Source: Tetramitus jugosus (lineage: Eukaryota; Protista; Heterolobosea). From it: DNA of 64,000 bases. The DNA is taken from NCBI GenBank assembly GCA_937625935.1, contig OW569378.1:248001-312000 (forward strand). The letters are read 5' to 3'. Below the pieces are notes generated by a model. It was not told the DNA's origin. It saw nothing but the letters and a program-made list of their open reading frames with translations, and did not search any database. Within the stretch, counting starts at the first letter, position 1. Every line of letters begins with the position of its first letter. Shown here piece after piece: positions 3,870 through 34,816 of this stretch. The translations under genes and the position numbers were made by a program.

Positions 3870-5660
3870 TCACTTCAGATGAGATCCTGGTTGTATCTTG
3901 GCTAGTTCAAACAGATTCATTGGATTTCCATTCGAGGAAACATACTTTCCATTCTGAGTGGCATTTGATACAGGTAAGTATGAACGACTGGAGTAATACG
4001 AGAGATTTGTTGCGTTCATTGGCTGAGGTGCAGGATACTGAATAGAACTATTGAGGGAGGAATTTAGTATCATGGATCCATGTAGGTTAGGAGATAGGAA
4101 GCTCGTATTCAAACTGTTCATTTGGACTGGCTGTGTCTTACTTAAACTTTTGTTAATAGAATGATATCCAGTATCCGAAATAATACTGGTATTGCATGAA
4201 CTCAAAAAAGAATTCTCCTTGTTTTCAATCATACTCGTATCAGGGCAGTTGGAGTCATTTAAGACCTCCAATTGTTTTTGTTTAGTCGTTATACTCTTCA
4301 AGATTTTTCTTTTGGATTTTGCAATTTGTCGAGCTCTCTGTAGGGTTGACAATGATTCCTTCAAGTTGGTTATTTCCTCGTTCAATGATACAATTTGAGA
4401 GTTCAGTTGTTCTATTGTTTGATCCCTTTCCTTCACAACCTTACGCTCAGAATTCAATTGATCCATCAAAGTTTGCTGCATCAGTTTTTTGCTCTCATCA
4501 ATCTTTTTGTACTTTTCATGAAGGTTTTGATGATCACTCTCCACTGTTTGGAACATTTCTGATAATTCCTTCATCTTCTTTTCTAACTCTCTATTCTTTT
4601 GGGAATACTCAGAGTTCTGAGACTTAGATTCTTCTAAATCAACTAGAGCACGATCTAAGTCACCTCGAATATCACTTTCTATGATGTCTCTTCTACTCTC
4701 AATGTGATCCAATTCCTCTCTCAAAGAGTTGGTTAGTTTGTTCGATTTTTCAACTTCTTCATTCATCATCTCCTTCTCTGCTTCTAGTTCTGATATCTTT
4801 TCTTGTAGCTCAAAATTAAGCTTGTTAAAAACATCCAGTTGTTGGAATACTTCTGAATATCTTGTTTCAGCAAATTGAAGTCTTGTCTTCAAATCTCCCT
4901 CCATTTGTTGATAAAATATTCTGGCATTCATCTCCTCGCTCAATTGACCATCTTTCGAAGAAAGAACTTGAGCAATGTTATTGTATCTCTCTGTAGTGAT
5001 CATTAAATCGGAATTGGATTTTGTCAACTGTTGTTTAAGTTGTTGAATTTCCTCCTTCGATTGAGAGCTATCTTCCTTTAACCTCTGATTCTCTCCTCTT
5101 AGGCTATTCAAATCTTGAGTTCTTTCTTCGATTACTTGAAGCAACGTTTCTCGTTCTTGGACTGCATCATTTCTCTCAGATTCGACGAGTTGATACTTTT
5201 CTTCTAGCTCAACTACCTAAGCCAATAATTAGTAAATAAGCCAATGGCAAGCGATAGAAAACAATGTTGCTGATACCTTTGCTAGTTTCTCTTCAAGTTT
5301 TCTGTCCATAATGTTATTCCTATTCTCTAGTTCTTTGTTTGTCTCCAGTGTTTCTGTTAGAACTCGTTCTACAGATGCTAGCTTCTCTGATTGACTCTGG
5401 AAGGCCATTGCTATATCATCACTTTCGATTCGAAGAGTATTAACCTCATAGACCAATCTTTCAGTGTCTTCGTCACCATCAAAGTGTTCCTCCAAAGCTC
5501 GATTCAAAACTTCAATCTCTTTTGCTTGTCTTTTCTGGATGTCTTCTAATTCTGCAATGTGCTTCCTTTGTTGTTGGTTCTTCTCCTTCATCTTGTTAAG
5601 GGCGGCCTCCATTTTGGCCATACTACCTTTTGTAGTTCCGGTGGTTCTCTTTGATTCCAT
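3870..5660 (-). CDS. Long coiled-coil protein, 2 exons (5660-5277, 5216-3870)
   Basis: A 60-nt GT...CTAAT...AG intron at 5217-5276 joins the two ORFs in frame; heptad-rich E/K/L sequence. Confidence 0.75.
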
Positions 5661-22699: not shown

Positions 22700-23400
22700 G
22701 CTAAGATTTCTTCAGTGGAACGACTTGGACGTAGTGGTACCAATTTCCCGTCATCGTAGACCACAACATCGAACACTATCTTTAACTTGGTCCCATAAAC
22801 TCCAGCTTGTCCAATTTGGCCTCGAATTCCTCTAGACCTTCTCTGACATTTGTGTTGCTCAACGCTTTATCACCTATCAACACTTCATTCGTTGTTCTCC
22901 GCTTTTTCCATCTCTTTTCGCATGGCTTGCCAAGAATTTCCAGGTAAGCCCTTATCCTTGAGTATCATGGTTTTCAACTTGAACTTCCTTTTTGCTTCCT
23001 CTAACGACACCATTATCCCATCATCATCGAAGAGTTGGGAGTTTTTAGTAATGCCACTTTGAACGAGTAATAGTTACCTCTCGACAAAGGCAGAGATCTT
23101 TGCCGTTTGAATCACTTTGAATTCATTGAGTCCAATGCCACCATTGTCCTCTACTGACAGCAGCAAAGAGGGAAACCTTTCATGGCACTCGATCCATGTT
23201 TCACTGCCTTGCGTCCAACCCCCCCCAATTTCGTTTAGCCACTTGGCCAATGGGTTAACTATACCTGAGAGGTAGAGTTTTTTGAGGATGGTGGATGGGA
23301 CGACTCTGCGTAGTTGCACCTGTACAGTTAATCTCATGTGCGTACATCCTGATGGCACACCACTTGTGGTAAGTTGACACGACATTCTCGAGTCTGTTGC
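22700..23400 (-). mobile_element. Non-LTR retrotransposon RT remnant, internally deleted
   Basis: TSGVPSGC (GVxQGC motif), IVNPLAKWL...GG and LLLSVEDNGGIGL (thumb GGLGL motif). Confidence 0.55.
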
Positions 23401-23477
23401 TTTACTGAAATACATCCTGCGTTTTTTATTGATAGCAGAGCCCTATTTTTGACTGAGATCCGTTTTTTCTCCACAGT

Positions 23478-23550
23478 TCCTCCATGGCTCAGTTGGTAGA
23501 GCGTCAGGCTGTTAACCTGCAGGTCGTTGGTTCGAGCCCAACTGGAGGAG
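23478..23550 (+). tRNA. tRNA-Asn(GTT)
   Basis: Acceptor TCCTCCA/TGGAGGA, anticodon loop CTGTTAA, GGTTCGAGCC T-loop. Confidence 0.95.
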
Positions 23551-23981
23551 ACCACTTTTGTTGTTTGCCCTGTTATCGTGAAAGCCCAGCTCAGGAAAGT
23601 AATGATGCTCGTGTAACGGTAAAATTTTGGCGCGTTTGTTTAACAATCATTGATTCCGTTGACATTGTACCATACTACGAGGAGACTCATAAGTTTGTAT
23701 AATGAGAGAGTTGTGTGACACAATTGCTTCACAAGAATGCAGGTTCATAAGTTGAAAATTGGTATCAATATTGTACTCTACTATTCAGTTCTGAAGAACA
23801 GAGGAGTTGTCTCAACAACAATAGTGAATGAACAGTTCACTGGTGTGTCAGGTTTGATAAACAACGATCCATGTTCATCGAATTACCATGGAGTCCATTT
23901 GATTTCTTTCCTGCTATTTTTTTTGAAGTTTTTGGACAGTGAACATAAACAATTCATTAATTCACTCAATATTTTTTAACA

Positions 23982-24046
23982 CACTGGATCGTCCACCACA
24001 GTCAGAAATTCTTGATACATCTTGGTCAGCCTCTGTCTGTTGAGTG
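23982..24046 (-). repeat. Third fragment related to the ORF of the 2793-3645 retroposon family
   Basis: Encodes QRLTKMYQEFLTVVD versus KRLTKMYEELLTVVD in copy A (about 2920-2965). Confidence 0.7.
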
Positions 24047-24139
24047 CTTTGTCACAATTCTTCACCCGGCAGGTTAACGCCCGCGTGTCCAAAGCTGCTG
24101 AGGCAGAATTGCTGTTCTCAAACTCAGGGTAGCGGCTGT

Positions 24140-24265
24140 AAATTGAGGGACATCAGAGAAAAACTGTCAATCATGAGAGGAGTCATTGATCATGCTAACA
24201 GGAATGATGATCAATTGTACCTACTCCTGACTGATATCGCAAAGGCTTTCGACTCTGTGCCAATG
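24140..24265 (+). mobile_element. Non-LTR RT remnant
   Basis: LSIMRGVIDHA...LYLLLTDIAKAFDSVP (DxxKAFDSV motif). Confidence 0.8.
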
Positions 24266-24473
24266 CAAAACCCTCTTGGTCGTTTCCCTTTATTACTACT
24301 TCACGGCAGTTGACTGCACCACCTTTTGGTCACACTGCATGTTTGTTTTTGACATACTCACGCACCTCCATTGGAGAGGATGGAATATTTCCGTTTGCAT
24401 TCGTTTCGTTTTTTATTTTTTATTGTTTTTTCATACTAATTCGGACAATTTATGAGATTTCTCGAATATGCAA

Positions 24474-24546
24474 GCCCGTCTAGCTCAGTCGGTAGAGCGC
24501 AAGGCTCTTAACCTTGTGGTCGAGGGTTCGAGCCCCTCGGTGGGCG
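24474..24546 (+). tRNA. tRNA-Lys(CTT), copy 1
   Basis: GCCCGTC...CAAGG-CTCTTAA-CCTTG...GGTTCGAGCC...GGTGGGCG. Confidence 0.95.
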
Positions 24547-26039
24547 ATGTCCTTTTACCTTCGTGGCTCACCACAAATAATCCATTCGTCACTCATCTAG
24601 TGTAGAACCGTTCCGTGACATTGTAGTGATTCATATCTTAGTTTGTAAAAATGGTTGGTTTTTTCTCCTCATCTGTTTTTTCCTTTGCAAATGCATCAGT
24701 GGTTAAATTTAGATCATAAATAGTTATTTCACAACATAATTTTTTACTATTTATTATTTGCGTTAATTTCAGGTTCTCTCGTTAAAGCTCGAGTACTTGA
24801 TAAGATAGGTTCTTTCCGACCAATTTTTTTAATCTGACCGATCTTTATTTGTTTTGTTTCGATCCGGTTGAATTACGAAAAGATTCGTGCATCCAGTAGC
24901 CATGCAGGACAAGTTCTGTCTCTTCAATGATTTCATTATAGAGCAAACCAACTAGTCGGTCTCCGGATTGGCACGAAACAGTTGAAAGCCTCATGCAAGG
25001 TCGGGCCCTACTTTAGGTAGGTGTTTGGCCACTGATGAAACTCAACGCTCTCTTTGCCTGACGTTGCACCATTCCTGCTGTTCATTGCTCAGAGTTAAAC
25101 AAATACATTACTAGTACTGAAGTAGAAGGTGTTGTGTGACTGACTTTATTCGAAGTGTAGAAAATGAAACACATCGTGAATCACAGAGAGCTGAGCTGAC
25201 AGGTTATTCAAGATCGCTGGCTATGTTCCCAATAATATATGTCCCCATGGCTTGTCATGACAAGATCTCCGACAAGCACTAACGACTTGCTTTGATGACA
25301 AAATTGATTTAGAGTAATGACTGTGTATCGAAACTGTCTATGCGCAAATGGATCGAAGCAATGAAAAGTCATCGCCCAAATGAATATAGAACGCTATAAC
25401 TTAAATGACGAAATACCTAAACAAATCTTGACGGTACAACGATGGCTCCCTTTTGAACGGTACAGAAGAATTTCAAGATTTAATGGATGAAGACACATTT
25501 CGGATAATGTGGTCCTACTCCAGGTGTTGTCTAAATTTGATGTTCGATGTGAAGCACACAAGAACTATGATAGAACTCATAGTGAGTCTCTGACAACGAC
25601 AAGAGTCAAGAGGCTCAGTCAGAGATTCGTTAAGAATAATGTATTACAGTGCTAGTTGTTTGATCAGGGTATAGTTGAACAACTGAATTCTCAAGTTTCT
25701 AATCTCCAACATTGCATTAGGTCTGAAATTCGAGATGAGCAGATGGAGGATACATATCAGGTTGAGTAAGATAGAGCTGACCTTGTCGAGAATGTTGGGC
25801 ATCGTTATTCTATTTGTTGGATTCTTTTCTCGTGTTCTTCAAGCTAATGCTTTCACCAGCCTTGTTGCTACCGTAGTTTAGTATAGGTCGTCCATGGCAA
25901 TCCTTAATGAAGAGTCGAAACTTCAAACGCAATCCCAAACTCCATTCATACCATTGTGAAAGTAAATATATTGTGGAGTACGGGAAGTACTATTGGTTCT
26001 ATCCTTCCAAGTGCACAGGTAATTCTGTCCAAAACAACA

Positions 26040-26357
26040 GTGAAACACTTGATAATTGGAGACTCTCAGTCTTTCATGTCCGATCAAACTATTTTGTAAA
26101 ATACCTCGACGTAAATGTCCAACCAAGGGGTCGAACACTTGCTTTGTCATCGGTACAGTGATAGTGGTGACAAAGTCGTCATAGGGATGAGCTTTCCTCA
26201 TTGTGGATTTGAACATACTTGCACCAGGTCTCTGAAGAAACTATCTCTTTCGTTGGTATCTGCTTGTAATTTTGAAGGAAAGAGTCTATTTTTCGGATGC
26301 TGCACGGACTTTGTCTTGGAAATTCTACTAGAATACCTCCACGTATTCTTCAACTCG
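26040..26357 (-). mobile_element. DIRS-like element relic: ~50-bp RT fragment plus possible collapsed tyrosine-recombinase C-terminus
   Basis: 26311-26360 is nearly identical to 30720-30775 within the RT ORF. The adjacent ORF reads FKST...TVP...DPLVGHLRRGILQNSLIGHERLRVSNY (HxxR-, LGH- and Y-like). The recombinase call is tentative. Confidence 0.45.
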
Positions 26358-27028
26358 AGTTGTGCTATTACAAGCAATGGAGAGAATCAAATTTCTAAAA
26401 ATGATCTTCGTGAGATACTGTTGTCATCGCGCGAGGTTCGTGGTGCTAATAGGTGCCCAAGAACAGATATGTACAATAGACTGAGAAAGTTGTTGACCAA
26501 GGTACCGGTCTTGGATGTGGTCTTGGATGTGTTTGTTGTAAACAATTGTGTTGCTTGGGAACGTTTCATTCACAGTTGGCTGCGTAACAGGCTTATTGCT
26601 GGGGAGGTGTTTGATACCAATAGAGAGGAGGCAATCTGGTGCTTAAAACATTGCTTTGGAATGCAGTTGGATAGCAATGCTTTTGTACCTGTTCGATCGA
26701 GGTTTTTTTCCATTTTCGTGAATCAAGTGCCCCAGGTATCATTGCCACATCCTCATGTTATGGTAATCTCGGTTCCTGGTATTGATAGAGTGTTGTTGTA
26801 CTTTACAGAGTCTCCGCGATCGTGGTTCGAAGAGTTCCTCGCCAGCAGTCTCACACTCATTGTATACTTGACGCATACAACGTGGGTCTTCTGTTGAAGG
26901 ATACTACAGTAGAATCAGTGAAGGAGGATCTCGGAGCTACAACATGTTGGTTGGGTCATTAATAAAACGAGGGCTCAGGTAGTTGACTTAACTCCATGAT
27001 GTTGAGGTAGGCAGTATACAATGAGTAT
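26358..27028 (+). pseudogene. T5orf172/MUG113 (GIY-YIG superfamily) nuclease, copy 1
   Basis: RL..L...WERFIHSWLRNRLIAGEVF. The N-terminal YV...KIG motif is damaged by a deletion relative to copy 2. Confidence 0.7.
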
Positions 27029-27394
27029 TTAATATAATATCATTTTTAGAGATTTGATTCCCTCCATTGATGCTCCTGTTCTTCTATAACCTATGCCATC
27101 AACAACATTCGTTGTGAGTTCTCTACAGCGATTTCGTTGTTGAGGGCTTCTGAATTTCTTTGGTGTTGGTGCTTTTGGTGGTGTATCCACTGTACTAGGT
27201 CGAGTTCGCTTGTTCCTACTTCCTGGAGGTCTACCACGACCCTTTTTTGGTGTTGGCTGTGTGTTGCCTTGATCGCTCTCTGGTTGTGTGTTGTCCGGAT
27301 GTGAACCTCTGTCTGTACACTGTGATCCATCTCGTTGAGTGTTGTCAGTACTCTGCGTATTGTCTTGTGTTCCAGCCGTTGTCACACCATTCAC
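27029..27394 (-). CDS. Small basic AT-hook protein
   Basis: PKKGRGRPPGSRNK AT-hook; start codon uncertain. Confidence 0.5.
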   Translation of the reverse strand: MNGVTTAGTQDNTQSTDNTQRDGSQCTDRGSHPDNTQPESDQGNTQPTPKKGRGRPPGSRNKRTRPSTVDTPPKAPTPKKFRSPQQRNRCRELTTNVVDGIGYRRTGASMEGIKSLKMILY

Positions 27395-27415
27395 TTGAAC
27401 AGTGTAAATTTCAAA

Positions 27416-28462
27416 TTACGCATCTATAGCAGTGTGTGAACTACGGTTCTGAGTGAATATGCTTCGTTTCGTTCTTATGAATGTAGGAACAAGGTGATCC
27501 CTTACGCCAAATGCCTTTCCAATGTTAGATTTGTATCTTTGATCTTCAACCTGAGGACAAAGCATAGCACGTTGGTAATCCCATATCTCACTGAGTGTGT
27601 CTGGCATGCCATTGTATATCTCTGCTTGTGCTTCTGCTGATCTTAGGTGTTCTTTTAGTTCTGTCAATACCTCTTCCTCTCTACGGTATAGATAGTCTCC
27701 ATCTTGAATCGTTTCAACTACTGAGTTAAATATACGCATCAATAGATAGTTACTCAGTTTCTTCGTAGAGAATATACTATTAAGAAATGACACCATCTTA
27801 TCCATATTTACCTCCAGATCCTTATCTGCAACATCTGATCCAGATAAATTGCATAATGAAGTTTTGCAACCAGACAGCACCTCTAATGCTTCAACAAATT
27901 GCTCTTTATTCTTACGCGCTGCACTTTCTCTAGATCGATCTGTTTTAGCTTGATCTGGGTCTTTGAACTTGATTGTCTGGAAGTTGTGCCTAATATGTAT
28001 ATTCTGACCTTTCTTCAATACTATCTTCATCATCAATACATATAGTTTCGATTCCTTCTCGTTCTTCAGCATCTTATTCTTCATCTTATATGCTGCAGTT
28101 ATGATACCTATGATATCTAAAAGTGCCTGTTTCGGATGGTGTATCGTCTCATCACTTTTGCCTTTGAGACAGCTCAAATATTTATGACTGCTGTTGACAG
28201 TTCTGCCATCAATAAGGTGAAATTTGTTCTCTGCATGTATCTTCTTGAATTGGTCCTTTGTCAATACGTATCGTTCAGTCATTTCTGTTGCTCTTGATTT
28301 TCTACCTCTTCGACCACTACTAGCTTTGAATTCTTCCACATATTGCGATAGATCGAATACGTTTCTTCGTATTCTCTTATCTGATTCATCTCGTGTGGAG
28401 TATGTAACTATTCCTAACTCAGTGAATCCACGTTCAAAATCATCATCATCAATATGTGGCAT
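27416..28462 (-). CDS. Intact intronless hypothetical protein (348 aa) within the mobile island
   Basis: Long ORF with A-rich leader; no domain recognised. Confidence 0.7.
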   Translation of the reverse strand: MPHIDDDDFERGFTELGIVTYSTRDESDKRIRRNVFDLSQYVEEFKASSGRRGRKSRATEMTERYVLTKDQFKKIHAENKFHLIDGRTVNSSHKYLSCLKGKSDETIHHPKQALLDIIGIITAAYKMKNKMLKNEKESKLYVLMMKIVLKKGQNIHIRHNFQTIKFKDPDQAKTDRSRESAARKNKEQFVEALEVLSGCKTSLCNLSGSDVADKDLEVNMDKMVSFLNSIFSTKKLSNYLLMRIFNSVVETIQDGDYLYRREEEVLTELKEHLRSAEAQAEIYNGMPDTLSEIWDYQRAMLCPQVEDQRYKSNIGKAFGVRDHLVPTFIRTKRSIFTQNRSSHTAIDA

Positions 28463-28723
28463 TTTTTTTTGTTTATTTGTGTGAAAAAAAGTTTTGTGTC
28501 ACTTGTTGTCAGATACTATGTTCAAACAAATCGTGCATAAAATACGTTTATTACTTCGTGAATGATGAATACATTGTTCTACACTTCTTGAATTCATCAG
28601 CATCAATGTCTGTTGTTTCTTTGTTGCTTCTTCTCTGCGAGAGACTGTCGCGGAAAGTGACACTCACATAAACAGTGATGAGAACAACAAATAAACAAAT
28701 TAACTGATCAAGTGAGTAATGTA

Positions 28724-29429
28724 TTAATCAAGAAAGTGAATAGATCTTCTGACTGGAACAGTGTCAGCATTACAAGTACTTCTGAAGAGTTGTGGTGGTG
28801 GGTTAGTAGTGTTATGTGACAGCTCATTCAAAGCCTTGAAGATACCTCTGTCATCAGCACCTCGGGTAGTTCTCTCTCTACTGTATCCAGATCCAGTTCC
28901 ACCAACATTCCTCACTATCCAATGCATATGGACACGAAGAACATCATTGACATGATCAAACATAAATACCATAGTGGATACTGTAACACACAAACTCCTC
29001 CTTTCACTATCTTCGTATCTGGAACTTCACCAATGGTTTGCAATAGAGAGAATCCATGTTGAATCATACGGATATTGAATAGTTCTACATTTCTTGGCTT
29101 TCTCAGAACCTTCTTGATTCTTTTTCGAATGAACAACTGTCTAAATACACCATAGTCGCAGTCTATATCGCTTGATCGTGTGAACTTGGTCAGTGTCTCC
29201 CAGATAGGGTGTGTTTGATGCAATTCACAATCTTCTTCTTGACCATGGCAACAGTGGCGTTCGACGGTTTCTCCCAACCAATACCCTTTCTACTTCTCAC
29301 TCTCTGAACACGTCTTAAATCTACGGTTGGTACATAATCATCGTCGTATTGGGTGTTCTTAACTCTCGCTCTTTGTGTGAATGATCTCTCATTAATCTCT
29401 TGTTGGATGTGTTCAGTTGATGATGTCAT
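28724..29429 (-). pseudogene. Frameshifted hypothetical gene (three overlapping ORFs)
   Basis: ORFs 29190-29429, 28915-29277 and 28724-28993 tile in successive frames. Confidence 0.5.
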
Positions 29430-29815
29430 TTTTTATTCGATGTATGGTGATGTGTGAAATCGTTTTGTGTGTTTTGATGATTTTGCCCTGGTTGAGTAAA
29501 ATGTCGTTGTTATATTCCTCGTCATCATGATCTCTGTTGTGTGCTTTTGTTTGCTGTGATTTTGGTTTTTGGTAGGCAAAAAAACTTTTTTCCTTGTTGT
29601 GATCAGACAATGCAACACTGTTTCTTGTTCTTTCTGTTTAGCTGAGCAGCCCTCAAATTGGTGAAAAGTCCCAGTGCCCTCCACCCTGTCTCGTTCCCTT
29701 TCCGATCTGGAAGCGTCTTGACAACTTGCCTGTTATTACTCTTGCCGAGTTATGGAAGCGATTGCGACTTGATTTTTACTAATTCGTACAGTTTATGAGA
29801 TTTCTTGATATGCAA

Positions 29816-29888
29816 GCCCGTCTAGCTCAGTCGGTAGAGCGCAAGGCTCTTAACCTTGTGGTCGAGGGTTCGAGCCCCTCGGTGGGCG
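29816..29888 (+). tRNA. tRNA-Lys(CTT), copy 2
   Basis: Identical to copy 1; about 40 bp of 5' flank (TACTAATTCG...ATGCAA) and the GTCCTTTT 3' flank are also conserved. Confidence 0.95.
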
Positions 29889-30029
29889 TGTCCTTTTGTC
29901 TCCCCTGAGTTTTTGACGGACTTTTTATTTACAACGAGTTTTACAATGTATTTACAATAAACACACTATAAAATACAATCAAAAATCAAAAGAAAGAGAA
30001 CATCTTGCTACCATATTGCTGAGCATTGC

Positions 30030-31138
30030 TCTAGAGCATGATGTGATTGGTCTCATTGTCGCGTTCTCTACACCAATTGTACTTACCAAGAAATCGTTGC
30101 CAGGTCTTGAGATCAATGTGCTCGCTCAATTTGACAGAGTCTTATGAGCAATGACAAATCCATCAGATGCTTGTCAGTAGTATACACACCTCTTTGCTCT
30201 GAACCAAAACATATTCTGTAACCACAGAACTCAATTTCTTGTCGCGGCTTCAACATAGACTTTGTGAGACTGATGGGGAAGCCATTCTTTTCGAGAGCAA
30301 CCTTTTGTTCCTCTACAAGGGCTAGGACACGCTCCTCTGACTCACCCAATAGCAAGAAGTCATCCAGATACACCAGAGTAGTCTTATGTGCGAGATGGGA
30401 CGTGACCACTTGACAACATGCAGGGGCACATTTGATACCAAATGGCACGCGAGTAAATTTGTATACCTTTCCTTTCCATCCGACACAGCAATAGGCTTGA
30501 AATGATTCATTTAACATGATGTTTGTGTAACAGGATTTGACATCAATTGAGGCTGCATAGGAATATTGGTCAGTGAGTCCGACGAGATTCTTTCGGGTTG
30601 GCAACTTACAGTCTGAATCAAGGATGAATTTGTTCAGTTCAGTAAAGTCGAGAACCTCTCTTGGACGGTTTGGATCTGATGCTCGTGGAACTACAGCAAT
30701 GGATGCAATGAATAATGCCTTGTCTCTTGGAATTTCTACTAGAATACCCTCCTTCACGTATTCTTCAACTCGAGTATCAATCAACTGAATATTTGAGCCT
30801 TTGACCCTATTGAGGATCATTGGTTGACGAAGCTTACTGCGAACAATGGCTTCTGGCTTGTAAAATCGAATTGTCATTCCTTCCTGCAAGATTTCTTGTG
30901 GTGTTTGCCAATATGGTCGACTCAGTTTCTCTGCCTTCGCTGGAACTTTGTTGTTCTTTTCATTGCCCATAGTCGGCACAGGACCAGTAGTTAACTTGAA
31001 ACGCTTTGGAGGCTCATAATTGATGAGTACGCTTTCCCCCACTACCGACGGCTCTCCATTATTCTCTGTGTGGGTTTGTAAAACCGCTTGTAGTGCCTTC
31101 ATTAAATGCATGGCTGCCTCTTTCCATTGGTCACTCAT
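30030..31138 (-). mobile_element. DIRS/tyrosine-recombinase-retroelement-type reverse transcriptase, 3'-truncated
   Basis: R.VLDFTELNKFI, SIDVKSCY, YKFTRVPFGIKCAP, LVYLDDFLLLG and KSMLKPRQEIEFCGY; frameshifted continuation WQRFLGKYNW; no RNase H left. Confidence 0.85.
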
Positions 31139-31351
31139 CTAGGGTAGTATATGTTGTGATTGCTTTTTGAGATCCTTGTTCTAGTCCAAAATGTTCCACG
31201 TTATTAACCCATCTAACACCCATCAACCTTATTACAATCTATTACAATCCATCAACAGCCATCATACAAACAATAAATAAACACACAAAAATCTCATGCA
31301 ATCCCAAACGCTCAAACTTAACCACTTCTTTCTTTGTTGTTTTTTCGTTTT

Positions 31352-31934
31352 ATGATTAGTTGTGCTATTACAATCAATGGAGAGAATCAAATCTCTAAAA
31401 ATGATCTTCGTGAAATTGGACAGTGTATCTATGTGTTGTCATCCCGCGAGGTTCGTGGTGCTAAAATAGGTCAAAGTACAGATATGTACAATAGGCTGAG
31501 GAAGTTGTTGACCAAGGTGCTGGTCTTGGATGTGTTTGTTGAAAAATAATTGTGTTGCTTGGGAACGTTTCATTCACAGTTGGCTGCGTAACAGGCTTAT
31601 TGCAGGGGAAGTGTTTGACACCAATAGAGAGGAGGCAATCTGGTGCTTGAAACATTGCTTTGGAATGCAATTGGATAGCAATGCTTTGGTACCTGTTCGA
31701 TCGAGGTACTTCTCCATTTTTGTGAATCAAGTGCCACAGGTCTCATTGCCACAACATCCTCATGTTATGGTTGACGCATACAATGTGGGTCTTCTTGAAG
31801 GATACAACAGTAGAATAAGTGAAGGAGGATCTCAAAGCTACAACATTATATGGTTGGGTCATTAATAAAACGAGGGCTCAGGTAGTTGACTTCCTTAACT
31901 CCATGATGTTGAGGTAGACAAGTACAATGAGTAT
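31352..31934 (+). pseudogene. T5orf172/MUG113 nuclease, copy 2 (one frameshift near 31545)
   Basis: CIYVLSS...AKIGQSTDMYNRL...ERFIH..L.NR..GEVF; close duplicate of 26358-27028. Confidence 0.75.
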
Positions 31935-32130
31935 ACAACGAGATTGTTGCTTGTCGGATTGTCTCCAAAATGTAGGAGGATAGAGGATATATAATTACCA
32001 CAAAAACCACTCAGCAATTATAAAAATTTACAATTTTGTGAAGGAGTTGTACTAGAGATTGTTTTTTCTCTAAAAAAAAAGAAGATAGAAACTGTAAAAC
32101 AATTAACGCTTTAGTTGGCGGCTAAATAAA

Positions 32131-32158
32131 CCTCGGTGGGCGACGTCCTTTTTGCCTC
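32131..32158 (+). repeat. Duplicated 3' end of tRNA-Lys(CTT) plus terminator flank (att-like)
   Basis: CCTCGGTGGGCG equals the last 12 nt of tRNA-Lys. It is followed by ACGTCCTTTTTGCCTC, similar to the flanks ATGTCCTTTTACCTTC and TGTCCTTTTGTCTC. Confidence 0.85.
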
Positions 32159-32414
32159 CGCCTGTTGGCCCTTGGTATGTTGGGAGTAGAATCACGAGCT
32201 ACGAAGCAAGTAACGAGAGGACTAACGAAGAATGGAATGACGAAGGACGTAATAGAGAGAAAAGCCAAACTATTTGTACAGAACACCAAGAGGAGATGTC
32301 TTGAGGTGATGAATGTCATCAAGAGGAAATGCTAGCAACGCTTTGTTGTATGGGTGACGGTCAAGAGTTACTGCATCTACGAGTTTGTTGAGTTATTTAA
32401 CAAACAGAGGATGA

Positions 32415-33324
32415 TTGGTAACAGCACTGCTGCCTCCAAGAGCCGTGTTGATTGCACAAGAACGGGGGGTCGTCCATGGCATGAAGAACATGTCAGTGGA
32501 CGACATCAAGAAGCTACTGGGACCTGATATTGTTGCAAGTGTGCTCAAAAAGCGTGACACTGCTTTCGTGGTCATGGATGATGAAACCTATGCACGAGTA
32601 GTGCTCAGCGGAGAGAACAATGTCAAGGTCACGGTCGCTCGATACGTCGAGAGATTATATGATATACCGGAACAAGAAATTGTAAAAAGAACTTCTCCAA
32701 GTGTCATGTCATATCACGTGCACAACTCAAGAAGCACATTGCAAGTACACTGTTGCACTGTCATCACGTACTGCAACAAACCGTTGACTGTTTCAATCAT
32801 GACTTGAATAAGAGCAACAATAATAATGATCTAATGGAGTCAGACGAACAAAGGAGTGCAACACCACTGCAAATAGTGCCTGTTGCACAGCTCAGCACTG
32901 AAATCGGCTAATCCTGCTCAACAAGGCCCTAAACAAACTCCTCTGTGTCCATCGACGGTCCTAGTACAAGGTTACGCTCTTTGATGAAGGGTTTGGGTTC
33001 ATGTTGGAGTCGTTTGTCCTTCACATTCGAACACATCGTACCTCAAAGAACGGCCAGAACCAATAGTTACAAATGCACCTTTGAGGATTCAATTGGAAAT
33101 CGTGAGGAAAGGGTTGTTGATGTCGCTCTCGAGTACTACGAATTTCAAGCGAGATAAGACCGATAGATCACAGCACCACAACCTAAACACTCACCAACCT
33201 ACAATAGAAACAACAACAACAAGAGAAGAAGAGTGAATGACGCCCACGGGTCGTCACTCACAAAACAAGTCAATAAATGAGCAATCTGGGCACAGCAAGT
33301 ACACATGGTTGTATGGAAAAAAAA
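32415..33324 (+). mobile_element. Retroposon family copy B (different internal deletions)
   Basis: Several blocks homologous to copy A, same 3' hairpin (33231-33259), AATAAA and A8 tail; 5' boundary uncertain. Confidence 0.8.
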
Positions 33325-33664
33325 CCGAATTAGTAAAAACCGAAAAGGGAGCTTAGGAAGAGTGGAATAAAGGAGGTGGCCAAGCTGTAGCAGTTTGTGG
33401 ACAACAAGTGATGCCTCGTCTCTTCACAAGCACATACATAAACTTTTTAAGTCTAGTGAAATGACCAACGAGCTGCACAACTTCCTTCTAGGTGTGGCGT
33501 TGTCGAGACACCCAACCCGGAATGCAAAAAGTCGAGCAAAATTGCGAACCTTTTTTGACGAACATCCAACTCCAAGTGCCTTTCGTCAACAGCTCAAAAA
33601 CCAAACAACAACACAATTCCCTTTTGTCGACCACAAAACGCAACAACATAACACACACAAAAGC

Positions 33665-34816
33665 ATGTCGAATAACACCTCTGCCTCGATCACAAGAAAC
33701 ACTTGTGATATCCTGTACAGTAAGATCCAAGATGAGTCCAGCATGTACGAGTTGCTCAAATATCCCTATGATGCCACGCTGTGGTCCAAATGGTACAAGA
33801 TTTACAAGAATAAGAACAATATGGATGCTGTGAAATGTTTGAGACGTCTAGTCATCAGAGATACACTCAAAGCTTGTGAGTTGAGCTGTTTGAGATACAA
33901 TCGGTTCGATCCGGTCAAGAACAAAGTAGAGAAGATTGCGCTCGTTCCCTCTGTTGATGCCATTCGGGACTGTGCTAAAAATACGCGCATGTATTATGAC
34001 GGAACAACTTTACAATGGAAAAGAACCAGCGAGATGACGGCAAACAAGACAGAGTTGACTGTTGTAAACGAAGATTGTTTGAGTGCTGCCCTGAGATTGA
34101 AGAGCCAAGGATTGAATCCCGTTGTGCTTAACAATGCCTCCATGAGAAGACCAGGAGGTGGTTACATGAATGGAGCTGGTGCTCAGGAGGAGAACCTGTT
34201 CCGTAGATCCACCTATTCTCTATCATTGGTTGATGGAGAACGGTTGGATGATTCAAGGGATTGGAGTTATCCCATTCCTGAGTTTGGAGGTATTTATTCG
34301 CCAGATGTCATGGTTTTCCGAGACACTGAGGACAATGGCTATGCCCATCTCCCAGAACCCATTCCAATGAGTTTTATTGCTGTTGCAGCCTATGTAAGGC
34401 CTCAATTGACTTTGATGGACAAGAAAAAGAAGATTTATCACTTAACGCACAAGTTTGCATCGAAAACAAAGGATAAGATTCGAACAATTCTGCGTATTGC
34501 GCTTCTACATGGTCACGATTCTGTAATATTGGGTGCATTTGGATGTGGTGCCTTCTGTAATCCTCCAGAGCATGTTAGTATGTTGTTCGATCAAGTTTTG
34601 TTTGAAGAAGAAGAATTCATTGGAGTGTTCAAGCACGTTTGCTTTGCTATCATTGAGGATGCGAACTCAAAGGGAAAGGTACATAATCCAAATGGAAACT
34701 TTGCACCATTCGAGAAGGTGTTTCGCCAACGATCAGCGCAACTAGAGGAAGGAGATGACTATCAAAACGAGAATGATGAACTTTTAGATGAAGATGAGCT
34801 CGAAGATCACATATAA
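33665..34816 (+). CDS. Bacterial-type poly(ADP-ribose) glycohydrolase (DUF2263/TIGR02452 macrodomain)
   Basis: VLNNAS...PGGGY..GAGAQEENLFRRS, IYSPDV.VFR and ILGAFGCGAF.NPP; start could be upstream at 33461. Confidence 0.9.
   Translation: MSNNTSASITRNTCDILYSKIQDESSMYELLKYPYDATLWSKWYKIYKNKNNMDAVKCLRRLVIRDTLKACELSCLRYNRFDPVKNKVEKIALVPSVDAIRDCAKNTRMYYDGTTLQWKRTSEMTANKTELTVVNEDCLSAALRLKSQGLNPVVLNNASMRRPGGGYMNGAGAQEENLFRRSTYSLSLVDGERLDDSRDWSYPIPEFGGIYSPDVMVFRDTEDNGYAHLPEPIPMSFIAVAAYVRPQLTLMDKKKKIYHLTHKFASKTKDKIRTILRIALLHGHDSVILGAFGCGAFCNPPEHVSMLFDQVLFEEEEFIGVFKHVCFAIIEDANSKGKVHNPNGNFAPFEKVFRQRSAQLEEGDDYQNENDELLDEDELEDHI

Follow-up and report, generated by a model that had tools for sequence, protein, structure and literature searches.

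Retrotransposons of the DIRS order (DIRS-1, Ngaro, PAT and VIPER) are 4-6 kb long and are characterized by a tyrosine recombinase (YR), RNase H and methyltransferase domains, a gag-like ORF, inverted or split terminal repeats and an internal complementary region. Penelope-like elements possess a telomerase-like reverse transcriptase (RT) fused to a canonical GIY-YIG endonuclease in one ORF, and their partial tandem and inverted arrangements have been ascribed to the cleavage properties of the endonuclease (PMC8557442). In compact genomes, multicopy tRNA genes offer safe landing sites to the Dictyostelium retrotransposons TRE5, TRE3 and DGLT-A and to yeast Ty1 and Ty3, which Pol III factors direct to positions tens of bases from the tRNA and outside the gene (PMC5006619). 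Dada DNA transposons, which also use such genes, do enter their target gene, generating 6-7-bp duplications and no rebuilding (PMC8869645). In prokaryotes, phages and islands rely on a DNA circle and an integrase of the tyrosine or serine type to insert at tRNA 3' ends, where the element completes the gene, giving an intact tRNA, the element and a displaced 3' fragment.

The element described here was found in a window of 64,000 nt from Tetramitus jugosus, and its copies were followed through the 26-Mb genome. It is 2.6 kb long and consists of an RT gene and a T5orf172 (GIY-YIG superfamily) gene on opposite strands. Like TRE, DGLT-A, Ty and Dada elements it makes use of multicopy tRNA genes; unlike any of these, it inserts into the tRNA coding sequence, always at one fixed base, and the gene is whole afterwards. 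Its RT is closest to those of the DIRS order, whereas the YR, the RNase H and methyltransferase domains, the gag-like ORF, the inverted or split terminal repeats and the internal complementary region are all absent from the element, its second gene codes for a T5orf172 nuclease and insertion is strictly at the tRNA edge. Membership of the DIRS order by YR, by RNase H/methyltransferase or by terminal repeats and internal complementary region was therefore rejected. With Penelope-like elements it shares an RT accompanied by a GIY-YIG-superfamily nuclease, the lack of RNase H, and partial tandem and inverted copies (arrays on C30, C15 and C23, inverted units on C14 and an inverted end on C40). 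However, it has an RT of the LTR/DIRS type, its divergent nuclease is encoded by a gene of its own on the opposite strand, it has one target sequence and no 5'-truncation pattern, and no hammerhead ribozyme was found (Rfam at E values up to 1 on positions 23000-33500 of the window, L061 and L043 gave tRNAs only); given the type of RT, the unfused nuclease and the missing ribozyme, a Penelope-like assignment was discarded. The element also shows the layout of a phage-type island, with an intact tRNA and a direct repeat of the tRNA 3' end, but in a eukaryote, with an RT and with no recombinase gene. By its integrase it is not such an island, as tyrosine recombinase searches, the type covered in the element, were empty and open copies contain no third ORF. 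No description of the combination, and no pairing of an LTR/DIRS-type RT with a GIY-YIG-superfamily nuclease, was found in the literature, in line with the first-pass annotation, which knew of no such element; the family has apparently not been described so far.

Two decayed copies in the window

Two intact tRNA-Lys(CTT) genes of the same sequence were identified in the window by ARAGORN and Rfam, at 24474-24546 (+) and 29816-29888 (+; 100% identical in repeat family D2). The element copy at the second gene, copy 2, retains both ends. The last 12 nt of this tRNA form the repeated core, and the left end of the element (29889-29981) brings a tRNA trailer of its own, with T-runs (TGTCCTTTTG... 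and two T5 runs after it). This end also serves the oppositely oriented RT gene as its 3' UTR and shares 96.5% identity with the corresponding end of the C30 copy. The RT gene (29982-31138, -) belongs to the C40 lineage and is broken. Its 341-aa ORF (30113-31138, -) matches Pfam RVT_1 with an E value of 3.7e-18 and retains the YLDD motif; alignment with the 410-aa C40 protein gives 96% identity over residues 1-340 and fragments thereafter, and a frameshift near 30126-30131 and a 3'-end deletion of ~92 nt have cost it the last ~70 residues. A spacer of ~210 nt (31139-31351), presumably a two-way promoter region, lies between the RT gene and the divergent T5orf172 gene (31352-31917, +), a head-to-head order that is kept in all copies. 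By tblastn with the C40 protein, the T5orf172 gene is found in three pieces with 95-97% protein identity to the open 227-aa C40 gene, and its disruptions are a premature stop (31547-31549) and the loss of ~105 nt after 31772. The right terminal region (31918-32130), a T-run/A-run palindrome of variable length that ends in GGCTAAATAAA, is conserved among the copies on C15, C30, C23 and C8, and C40 has it in inverted form. The right boundary is an exact 12-nt copy of the tRNA-Lys 3' end, CCTCGGTGGGCG (32131-32142, +; repeat family D7), directly followed by the trailer-like ACGTCCTTTTTG (32143-32154), in which the 10 nt from 32143 agree at 9 positions with the trailer of tRNA copy 1. The intact tRNA, the RT, the T5orf172 gene and the exact 12-nt copy at 32131 had all been noted in the first-pass annotation, and each of them was confirmed.

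The first tRNA (Rfam tRNA 66.7 bits), which has the same sequence as the other 24 genes of the genome, is directly followed by the trailer ATGTCCTTTT (24547-24556). In element copy 1, the RT gene is reduced to ~50 nt (26314-26360, -; repeat families D11 and D16) with a 96% match to 30725-30775; repeat analysis shows that it abuts, and is fused to, a T5orf172 relic (26358-27007, +; in ORF 26115-26897; repeat families D1-D10). By tblastn, this relic is 76% identical over 217 aa to the C40 T5orf172 protein and lacks the GIY and KIG motifs. The right-hand 12-mer is absent from copy 1, and none of the T5orf172 pieces of either copy has a Pfam match. Both copies are decayed, as had been claimed, with disruptions now mapped in both genes; they are dead relics, and copy 1 has been scrambled by other repeats. 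The first 36 nt of the T5orf172 gene recur in inverted form at 27036-27071 (-; inverted repeats I1 and I2), where an unrelated 2.5-kb repeat has its edge; this piece matches C40:275866-275901.

Insertion at the 3' end of tRNA-Lys genes

At least 8 of the 25 tRNA-Lys(CTT) genes of the genome, all of which are identical, are occupied by the 2.6-kb unit with its two genes or by remains of this unit, with constant position and orientation. One further copy is located at a tRNA-Lys(TTT) gene, which is 82% similar to the tRNA-Lys(CTT) target. The right boundary is marked by the 12-mer in at least six copies, and the 12-mer occurs in 34 places genome-wide (3 for the reversed control), namely 25 tRNA-Lys genes, one 5'-truncated tRNA, seven element junctions and one mismatched chance site. 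Hence, the succession of intact tRNA, element and 3' fragment that was proposed from the window alone recurs elsewhere, and with this number of occupied genes and 12-mer boundaries the copies are tRNA-associated and the 12-mer belongs to the element, the two points on which the proposal was said to depend.

Occupied tRNA-Lys genes share a constant trailer on the tRNA side (ATGTCCTTTTGTCTCCG.CTGAG), which differs from those of empty genes; the trailers past the right 12-mer vary in the same manner as at empty genes. In tandem arrays, the units are divided by the 12-mer only, without whole tRNAs between them, and the least decayed unit is the one adjoining the intact tRNA. The sole terminal repeat consists of the 12-23-nt tRNA core plus trailer, and no internal copy of the joined ends was found within any single unit. 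Upstream of the other occupied tRNAs, the flanks show no relationship past ~10-17 nt; the two tRNA-Lys genes of the window have 32 nt of upstream flank in common (repeat family D9), indicating at least one local duplication in the window; since all tRNA-Lys copies are identical, the tRNA sequence is of no use for dating these events. A derivative of ~600 nt with both ends is present at two tRNA-Lys genes whose flanks on the upstream side are unrelated, and the element has spread to several tRNA loci, including in the form of a non-autonomous deletion derivative. Defective copies are internal deletions with both ends kept, and neither a poly(A) tail at the element end nor a 5'-truncation series was seen, the A-run being located 45 nt inside the right end. 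Based on these two features and the LTR/DIRS-type RT, the class of site-specific non-LTR (target-primed, R2-like) elements was rejected.

Gene content, selection and affinity

All nine T5orf172 domains in the genome (PF10544) lie beside an RT of the element family in such units, and no T5orf172-only unit was found. As had been suggested from the window, the two genes belong to one element, their head-to-head linkage being present in every copy. Copies with both frames open contain just these two ORFs in 2.6 kb. The intact RT-only protein has 410-436 aa, carries YLDD, lacks RNase H and ends ~95 aa past the RT domain, with Pfam finding RVT_1 only; the T5orf172 protein has 227-245 aa. PF10544 scores of 24.8-28.9 bits for open copies (25 for the 227-aa C40 gene) and of 26-35 bits in the genome search exceed the curated cut-off of 20 bits and by this profile place the protein in the T5orf172 family and GIY-YIG superfamily. 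The motifs IY.LSS, K(I/L)G.S, RL.KL, WERFIHSWLR and AGEVF are invariant across 50% divergence, and the retained GIY/KIG/R/H/E residues, like YLDD in the RT, are conserved; those of T5orf172 are putative catalytic residues. No solved structural relative of T5orf172 was found by sequence search, and structure models reached pLDDT values of only 36-39, too low for use.

Three RT lineages with 56-65% protein identity are present in the genome, each with the head-to-head pair. For both genes dN/dS is 0.1-0.3, which indicates purifying selection, the RT dS being saturated between lineages. The C15 and C30 RT genes differ by a dS of 0.004; between the C30 and C40 copies, the T5orf172 gene and the ends are ~95% identical (dS 0.26) and the RT is saturated.

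In the RT tree, the element family (support 100) groups with methyltransferase-bearing DIRS-like RTs, split from rve-bearing Ty3-like RTs with support 100, and falls outside the DIRS-like group proper (support 88); as the tree contains no distant outgroup or named references, a sister of DIRS and a third lineage are indistinguishable in it. The best single-domain RT matches are RT-RNase H-methyltransferase proteins with 30-35% identity, and the best matches include P0109, with a YR in the same chain, and P0004, with an adjacent YR gene. A methyltransferase-like domain is present in 44 RT database matches, and among RTs of solved structure, the CaMV, foamy virus and Ty3 enzymes are nearest. The earlier designation as a DIRS-type RT agrees with the tree and the database matches, which point to an RT nearest to DIRS-like RTs and apart from integrase-bearing Ty3-like ones.

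The first-pass annotation went further and proposed a YR retrotransposon that integrates circles, a claim that found no support. PF00589 was without match in the whole genome (controls positive), as was a DIRS-type YR protein query, and nothing was found when three YR queries were run by tblastn against the window and ten element loci. RNase H and methyltransferase queries likewise gave nothing by tblastn on the window and element loci. As none of the three enzymes was found in any copy or in the genome, the YR retrotransposon label is unsupported. Because the YR searches were empty and the element has two ORFs only, T5orf172 is not a passenger of a YR element, as which it had been regarded, but the only candidate integration enzyme; judging from sequence, it is most likely the integration enzyme and a putative nuclease. 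None of the RNA runs contains the element.

Relatives at other tRNA genes

A sister subfamily targets the first 14 nt of tRNA-Trp. At three of the seven tRNA-Trp genes the native ...ATGGAA leader is replaced by that of the element, and the fragment junctions also carry the leader of the element and not the native one, so that one simple insertion does not account for the Trp type. A distant environmental relative has an equivalent layout at tRNA-Asn, with a 24-nt copy of the last 24 nt of the tRNA, and the metagenome contigs L061 and L067 encode the same head-to-head pair of RT and T5orf172. The terminal repeats thus measure 12 (Lys), 14 (Trp) and 24 nt (Asn), which argues for homology and not for a fixed stagger.

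Proposed mechanism and alternatives

We consider it probable that the unit is a small, autonomous, site-specific retroelement of ~2.6 kb, in which the T5orf172 nuclease replaces a recombinase or integrase and the DNA copy is joined at the tRNA edge. Each subfamily targets the edge of one tRNA gene (Lys(CTT), Trp or Asn). For its movement, we infer an RNA intermediate and the following cutting mechanism: the T5orf172 nuclease would cut inside this gene, and the RT-made DNA copy would be joined at the break through its short tRNA-identical termini, whether in a homology-assisted, 'retrohoming-like' repair or in target-primed synthesis. Once the element is in place, target bases flank it on both sides. 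It brings the tRNA gene a fresh trailer containing Pol III terminator T-runs or, in the Trp type, a fresh leader, so that a complete tRNA gene survives. The same junctions are expected from a 12-nt staggered cut, a homology-assisted join or a recombination core, and against an RNA intermediate count the two genes on opposite strands, awkward for a single genomic RNA, the missing terminal poly(A) tail and 5'-truncation series, and RNA runs free of the element. More tentatively, and with somewhat less than even confidence, the family may constitute a separate eukaryotic retroelement lineage, in which an LTR/DIRS-type RT, after loss of recombinase, RNase H and gag, is partnered with a stand-alone T5orf172 homing-type nuclease that opens the tRNA gene at its edge, and a cDNA with a built-in copy of the tRNA edge and a Pol III terminator or leader is joined by short homology. 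If so, the host would never lose a tRNA gene, and subfamilies would switch targets between Lys, Trp and Asn by exchanging the terminal tRNA mimic.

GIY-YIG enzymes are classic homing endonucleases, and the best of the alternatives is homing at the DNA level, in which T5orf172 cuts empty tRNA genes, repair copies the occupied paralogue and the RT, unneeded for movement, serves another purpose. The two homology arms would be the tRNA body and the 12-23-nt core plus trailer. The junctions are those expected from synthesis-dependent repair off an occupied donor, and the internal-deletion derivatives with both ends, the insertion at the 82%-similar tRNA-Lys(TTT) and the C30/C40 mosaic, which resembles gene conversion between DNA copies, all fit. 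However, an RT is tied to every T5orf172 gene, both in the genome and in the distant environmental relatives, T5orf172 has not been found on its own, and the RT is under purifying selection and keeps its catalytic YLDD motif, as would not be expected to persist in a gene useless for spread. Hence, we regard homing without the RT as unlikely.

A DIRS-order retrotransposon that carries T5orf172 as an extra gene and whose circle enters a tRNA att site by means of a tyrosine recombinase is far less probable still and close to refuted: although the RT groups with DIRS-like RTs, the layout resembles prokaryotic island integration and the tandem junctions look attP-type, no YR was detected by profile, protein or tblastn searches, open copies have two ORFs only, and RNase H, methyltransferase, inverted terminal repeats and internal complementary region are lacking. 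Segmental duplication of a tRNA-Lys locus carrying the RT/T5orf172 pair by chance, never mobile as a unit, is hardly credible, as the common flank of the two window genes and the undatable, identical tRNAs that favour it are set against unrelated flanks at the other occupied genes, array units divided by the 12-mer in place of whole tRNAs, and the same layout at tRNA-Lys(TTT) and tRNA-Trp and, outside this organism, at tRNA-Asn.

Relics of non-LTR retrotransposons are also located beside tRNA genes in the same genome.

The two copies in the window and open copies elsewhere

The tRNA-Lys(CTT) genes at 24474-24546 and 29816-29888 have the same sequence (ARAGORN, Rfam), and each is followed by a decayed copy of an element of about 2.6 kb, in which a gene for a DIRS-like reverse transcriptase (RT) and a gene for a T5orf172 protein of the GIY-YIG superfamily lie head-to-head. 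The arrangement described in the first-pass annotation, namely the tRNA-Lys genes, the RT, the T5orf172 gene and a copy of the tRNA 3′ end at 32131, proved correct throughout, as did the decay of both copies. In copy 2, a left end of 93 nt that opens with a tRNA-like trailer lies directly 3′ of the tRNA and is followed by the RT gene on the minus strand (open part 30113-31138; RVT_1 match, E 3.7e-18), a spacer of about 210 nt, the T5orf172 gene, which runs on the plus strand at 31352-31917, and roughly 210 nt of terminal sequence. At 32131-32142 the final 12 nt of the tRNA recur exactly (CCTCGGTGGGCG, the 12-mer), with the trailer-like ACGTCCTTTTTG behind them. Neither gene is intact: the RT matches the 410-aa open frame of the copy on C40, another contig of the assembly, with 96% identity over residues 1-340, beyond which its frame shifts and about 92 nt are deleted, while the T5orf172 gene is interrupted by a stop at 31547-31549 and lacks about 105 nt. 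Copy 1 consists only of scraps 3′ of the first tRNA-Lys, flanked left and right by unrelated repeats. An RT scrap of about 50 nt (26314-26360) is joined to a T5orf172 relic (26358-27007) from which the GIY and KIG motifs are gone, and a 36-nt piece of the start of the T5orf172 gene lies inverted at 27036-27071. The approximately 820 nt at 25386-26208, between the tRNA and the RT scrap, are 85-86% identical to C2:70242-71105 and C6:14412-15269 and belong to another repeat family, which contributed to the scrambling of this copy. The upstream flanks of the two tRNA genes (24434-24465 and 29777-29808) have 32 nt in common at 91% identity, so the tRNA pair represents a local duplication and not two independent loci. 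The copies in the window are relics, and since both are dead the biological weight of the window alone is small; it is the element family that is of real interest.

When the 26.35-Mb assembly (56 contigs), in which the window is C35:248001-312000, was searched with the RT protein and with T5orf172 DNA, the gene pair was located on C40, C15, C30 and C23, head-to-head every time and adjoining tRNA-Lys(CTT), with the 3′ end of the RT gene facing the 3′ end of the tRNA. All T5orf172 profile matches in the genome (9/9) fall within such units, which bears out the earlier proposal that the two genes belong to one element. Copies with both frames open contain exactly two ORFs, encoding an RT-only protein of 410-436 aa with a YLDD motif and a protein of 227-245 aa that scores above the Pfam cut-off for T5orf172; dN/dS is 0.1-0.3 for each gene. 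Two AlphaFold models of the T5orf172 protein had a pLDDT of 36-39, and a profile search of PDB sequences with this protein returned nothing meaningful. Alignment of five copies with their flanks set the left edge directly after the tRNA, where a constant trailer (ATGTCCTTTTGTCTCCG.CTGAG) is followed by two T5 runs, and the right edge at ...GGCTAAATAAA, after which CCTCGGTGGGCG follows. In the C40 copy the terminal 208 nt are inverted (C40:275028-275237, positions 5028-5237 of the studied stretch L049); one breakpoint lies within the 12-mer (CCTCGGTG/GGCG) and the inverted segment is followed by a native-type trailer, ATGTCGTTTTGCC. This breakpoint, a single case, may mark the site of DNA cleavage. 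Between the C30 and C40 copies, the T5orf172 genes differ with a dS of 0.26 and both ends are about 95% identical, whereas the RT genes have 61% protein identity and a saturated dS. The T5orf172 gene and the ends being far more alike than the RT, the element is a mosaic, which implies recombination or gene conversion between lineages.

Specificity for tRNA-Lys genes

The genome has 25 tRNA-Lys(CTT) genes, all identical, eight of which (8/25) are occupied by the element or a relic of it. In a census that listed every occurrence of the 12-mer with the following 22 nt, it was found at 34 places, compared with three for the reversed control: the 25 tRNA genes, one 5′-truncated tRNA, seven element junctions and one mismatched chance site. 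The suggested association with the 3′ end of tRNA-Lys is upheld by the eight occupied genes and by these seven junctions. For empty tRNA-Lys and tRNA-Trp loci, the flanking sequence was taken from pattern searches. Empty tRNA-Lys genes have about 11 nt of their trailer in common (ATGTNNTTTTG) and diverge beyond; all occupied genes carry the trailer of the element, and the trailers that follow right-end 12-mers are variable, like native ones. On C30, three consecutive units form an array, with only the 12-mer and the element's trailer between them and a native-type trailer after the final 12-mer. In each array the best-preserved unit is the one adjoining the whole tRNA, which fits repeated insertion into a complete tRNA gene. 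One copy lies at the same position of tRNA-Lys(TTT), where the tRNA keeps its own 3′ end. A derivative of about 600 nt, in which the left end has kept 136 nt and the right end 300 nt, is present at two tRNA-Lys genes on C8 with unrelated upstream flanks; its spread was thus non-autonomous, and the two ends are important in cis. That the tRNA is cargo of the element is ruled out by the arrays, where only the 12-mer lies between units, by the unrelated upstream flanks and by the copy at tRNA-Lys(TTT). A role of the 12-mer as primer-binding site for mature tRNA-Lys is likewise ruled out, as the sequence alongside lacks the complement of CCA.

Affinity of the reverse transcriptase

Close relatives of the RT are almost absent among 5.8 billion proteins. 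The next matches in an exhaustive search, at 30-35% identity, are RT-RNase H proteins, 44 of them with a DIRS-type methyltransferase-like domain. One methyltransferase-bearing DIRS-like RT (database protein P0109) carries a tyrosine recombinase on the same polypeptide, and another DIRS-like match has a weak Phage_integrase gene next door. Ty3-like polyproteins with rve reach 24-26% identity and score only through several copies, and look-alikes in the ESM Atlas belong to generic RVT_1 clusters only. In a tree of 69 RT cores the element RTs form one clade (support 100). The first-pass annotation had called the RT DIRS-type, and this holds in part: the clade falls on the DIRS-like side of the split from the rve group (support 100) but branches outside the DIRS-like group (support 88), and as the tree has no farther outgroup, "DIRS-like" denotes an affinity, not a placement. 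The tyrosine recombinase envisaged for integration was not recovered; profile, protein and tblastn searches found no similarity to tyrosine recombinases, RNase H or methyltransferases in the window or in ten element loci, and none to tyrosine recombinases in the whole genome. The same searches were negative at 26040-26220, where a collapsed tyrosine recombinase C-terminus had been considered. No hammerhead or HDV ribozyme was detected with Rfam at E up to 1, nor was the hammerhead-like motif proposed at 24980-25107 recovered.

Relatives at other tRNA genes

A sister subfamily (RT identity 56-58%) is located at tRNA-Trp. Here, the T5orf172 side bears a repeat of the initial 14 nt of the tRNA (GGGGGGTTAGCTCA), and the whole tRNA follows the RT side; at three of the seven tRNA-Trp genes the element's leader replaces the native ...ATGGAA leader. 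The junctions of Trp-type fragments also carry the element's leader and are not accounted for by one simple insertion. In the metagenome scaffold L061 (RT identity 51%, T5orf172 identity 55%), tRNA-Asn(GTT) is followed by T5orf172 (-), RT (+) and, over 24 nt, the tRNA-Asn 3′ end once more, complete with a proper trailer; relative to the repeat, the two genes are turned round. That the target repeats measure 12, 14 and 24 nt speaks for ends that copy the target rather than for a cut of fixed stagger. At 2357-2840, the RT 3′ region of L061 also contains a long imperfect inverted repeat of about 140 nt (GAGGGTTGCAACAGACTGG ... CCAGTCTTGCAAC ... CAACCCTC), which may be a structured RNA and is absent from the Lys-type element. 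More distant RTs (41-43% identity), at L064 890-2119 and L067 2178-3785, have an N-terminal GRF-type zinc finger. The partner in L067, a metagenome scaffold with an RT identity of 41%, is a divergent 557-aa protein with a T5orf172-like domain, and in L064 (43%) no T5orf172 was found in the part of the contig examined. One of these two RTs has FLDD instead of YLDD and ordinary eukaryotic genes as neighbours (IML1/DEPDC5), and may be a domesticated or differently organised relative.

Logan contigs from four runs, compared with the C30 array, revealed near-identical copies not only in the source organism but also in metagenomes from soil and freshwater, and one environmental contig spans the head-to-head gene pair without a break. 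Many short-sided joints were also seen, indistinguishable from cross-mapping between copies. Contigs 95-99% identical to the element (2700-8600 of L051, the C30 stretch; read runs X4 and X5) come from soil, freshwater, groundwater and hot-spring metagenomes, indicating that the host or its close relatives are widespread free-living organisms.

Proposed mechanism

The element is mobile and site-specific, its movement needs both ends, it retains both genes under selection and it leaves a whole tRNA gene with its own terminator. GIY-YIG enzymes are known as homing and Penelope endonucleases, and the T5orf172 protein is the sole nuclease or recombinase candidate; hence, we hypothesize that it breaks the tRNA gene. 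The RT would make the DNA that is joined in, and the short target-identical ends would allow the cDNA to be joined at the break through homology-assisted repair. Alternatively, a staggered cut with target-primed synthesis could yield the same junctions. The main rival is homing at the DNA level, in which the RT has no role. Such homing accounts for the junctions and for the mosaic but leaves the constant retention of the RT unexplained. Weak points of the RT-based mechanism are that the two genes lie on opposite strands and that no RNA run contains the element. Since the element is small, has a single-sequence target and carries a target mimic that seems to be swappable, its mechanism can be tested directly; for the same reasons, the T5orf172 protein is a candidate sequence-specific nuclease for tRNA genes.

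Relation to known elements

Retrotransposon orders are told apart by the RT clade and the integration enzyme with which it is paired. The pairings given in PMC8557442 are LTR/DIRS RTs with an integrase or tyrosine recombinase, LINE RTs with an AP or restriction-like nuclease and Penelope RTs with GIY-YIG; an LTR/DIRS-type RT with a GIY-YIG-superfamily nuclease is not among them. The latter would be a new pairing and a second, independent recruitment of the GIY-YIG-superfamily fold by retroelements. Full-text literature searches found no paper joining T5orf172 or MUG113 with a retroelement RT and no DIRS-like element at tRNA genes, and a survey of the tRNA-targeting retrotransposons of dictyostelids includes no such element (PMC5006619). 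The family thus appears to be undescribed, as had been suspected of this combination. Dada transposons also enter tRNA genes, but with 6-7-bp duplications and without rebuilding the gene (PMC8869645), in contrast to the present element, which leaves the tRNA gene whole. In this respect it is a eukaryotic counterpart, without the recombinase, of the prokaryotic strategy of integrating into a tRNA and rebuilding it. Yeast YPL034W, of the MUG113 family, interacts genetically with TFC6, there called an RNA polymerase III subunit (PMC12719033), which is taken as a lead only.

Neighbouring features of the window

Between the two tRNA-Lys genes, a 2.5-kb unit at 27068-29601 recurs at C9:303155-305690 with 99% identity, and C18:521120-521576 matches its first 457 nt perfectly (100%). 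Its ORFs encode 348 aa and 121 aa, the latter with an AT-hook-like GRGRPPGSRNKR, and neither has a Pfam match; the unit is a recently copied repeat, separate from the RT/T5orf172 element. Just right of the element, an ORF at 32415-32807 (+) is homologous to a 370-404-aa protein that adjoins tRNA genes at other loci (L050 837-1385, L052 1639-2853 and L056 3179-4291). The repeat encoding this protein abuts the Trp-type element with its terminal A-run in L054 and L056, pointing to a family of tRNA-associated non-LTR retrotransposons in this genome. Further along, at 33395-34816 (+), a 473-aa ORF contains a microbial-type poly(ADP-ribose) glycohydrolase domain (PF10021, E 9e-30).
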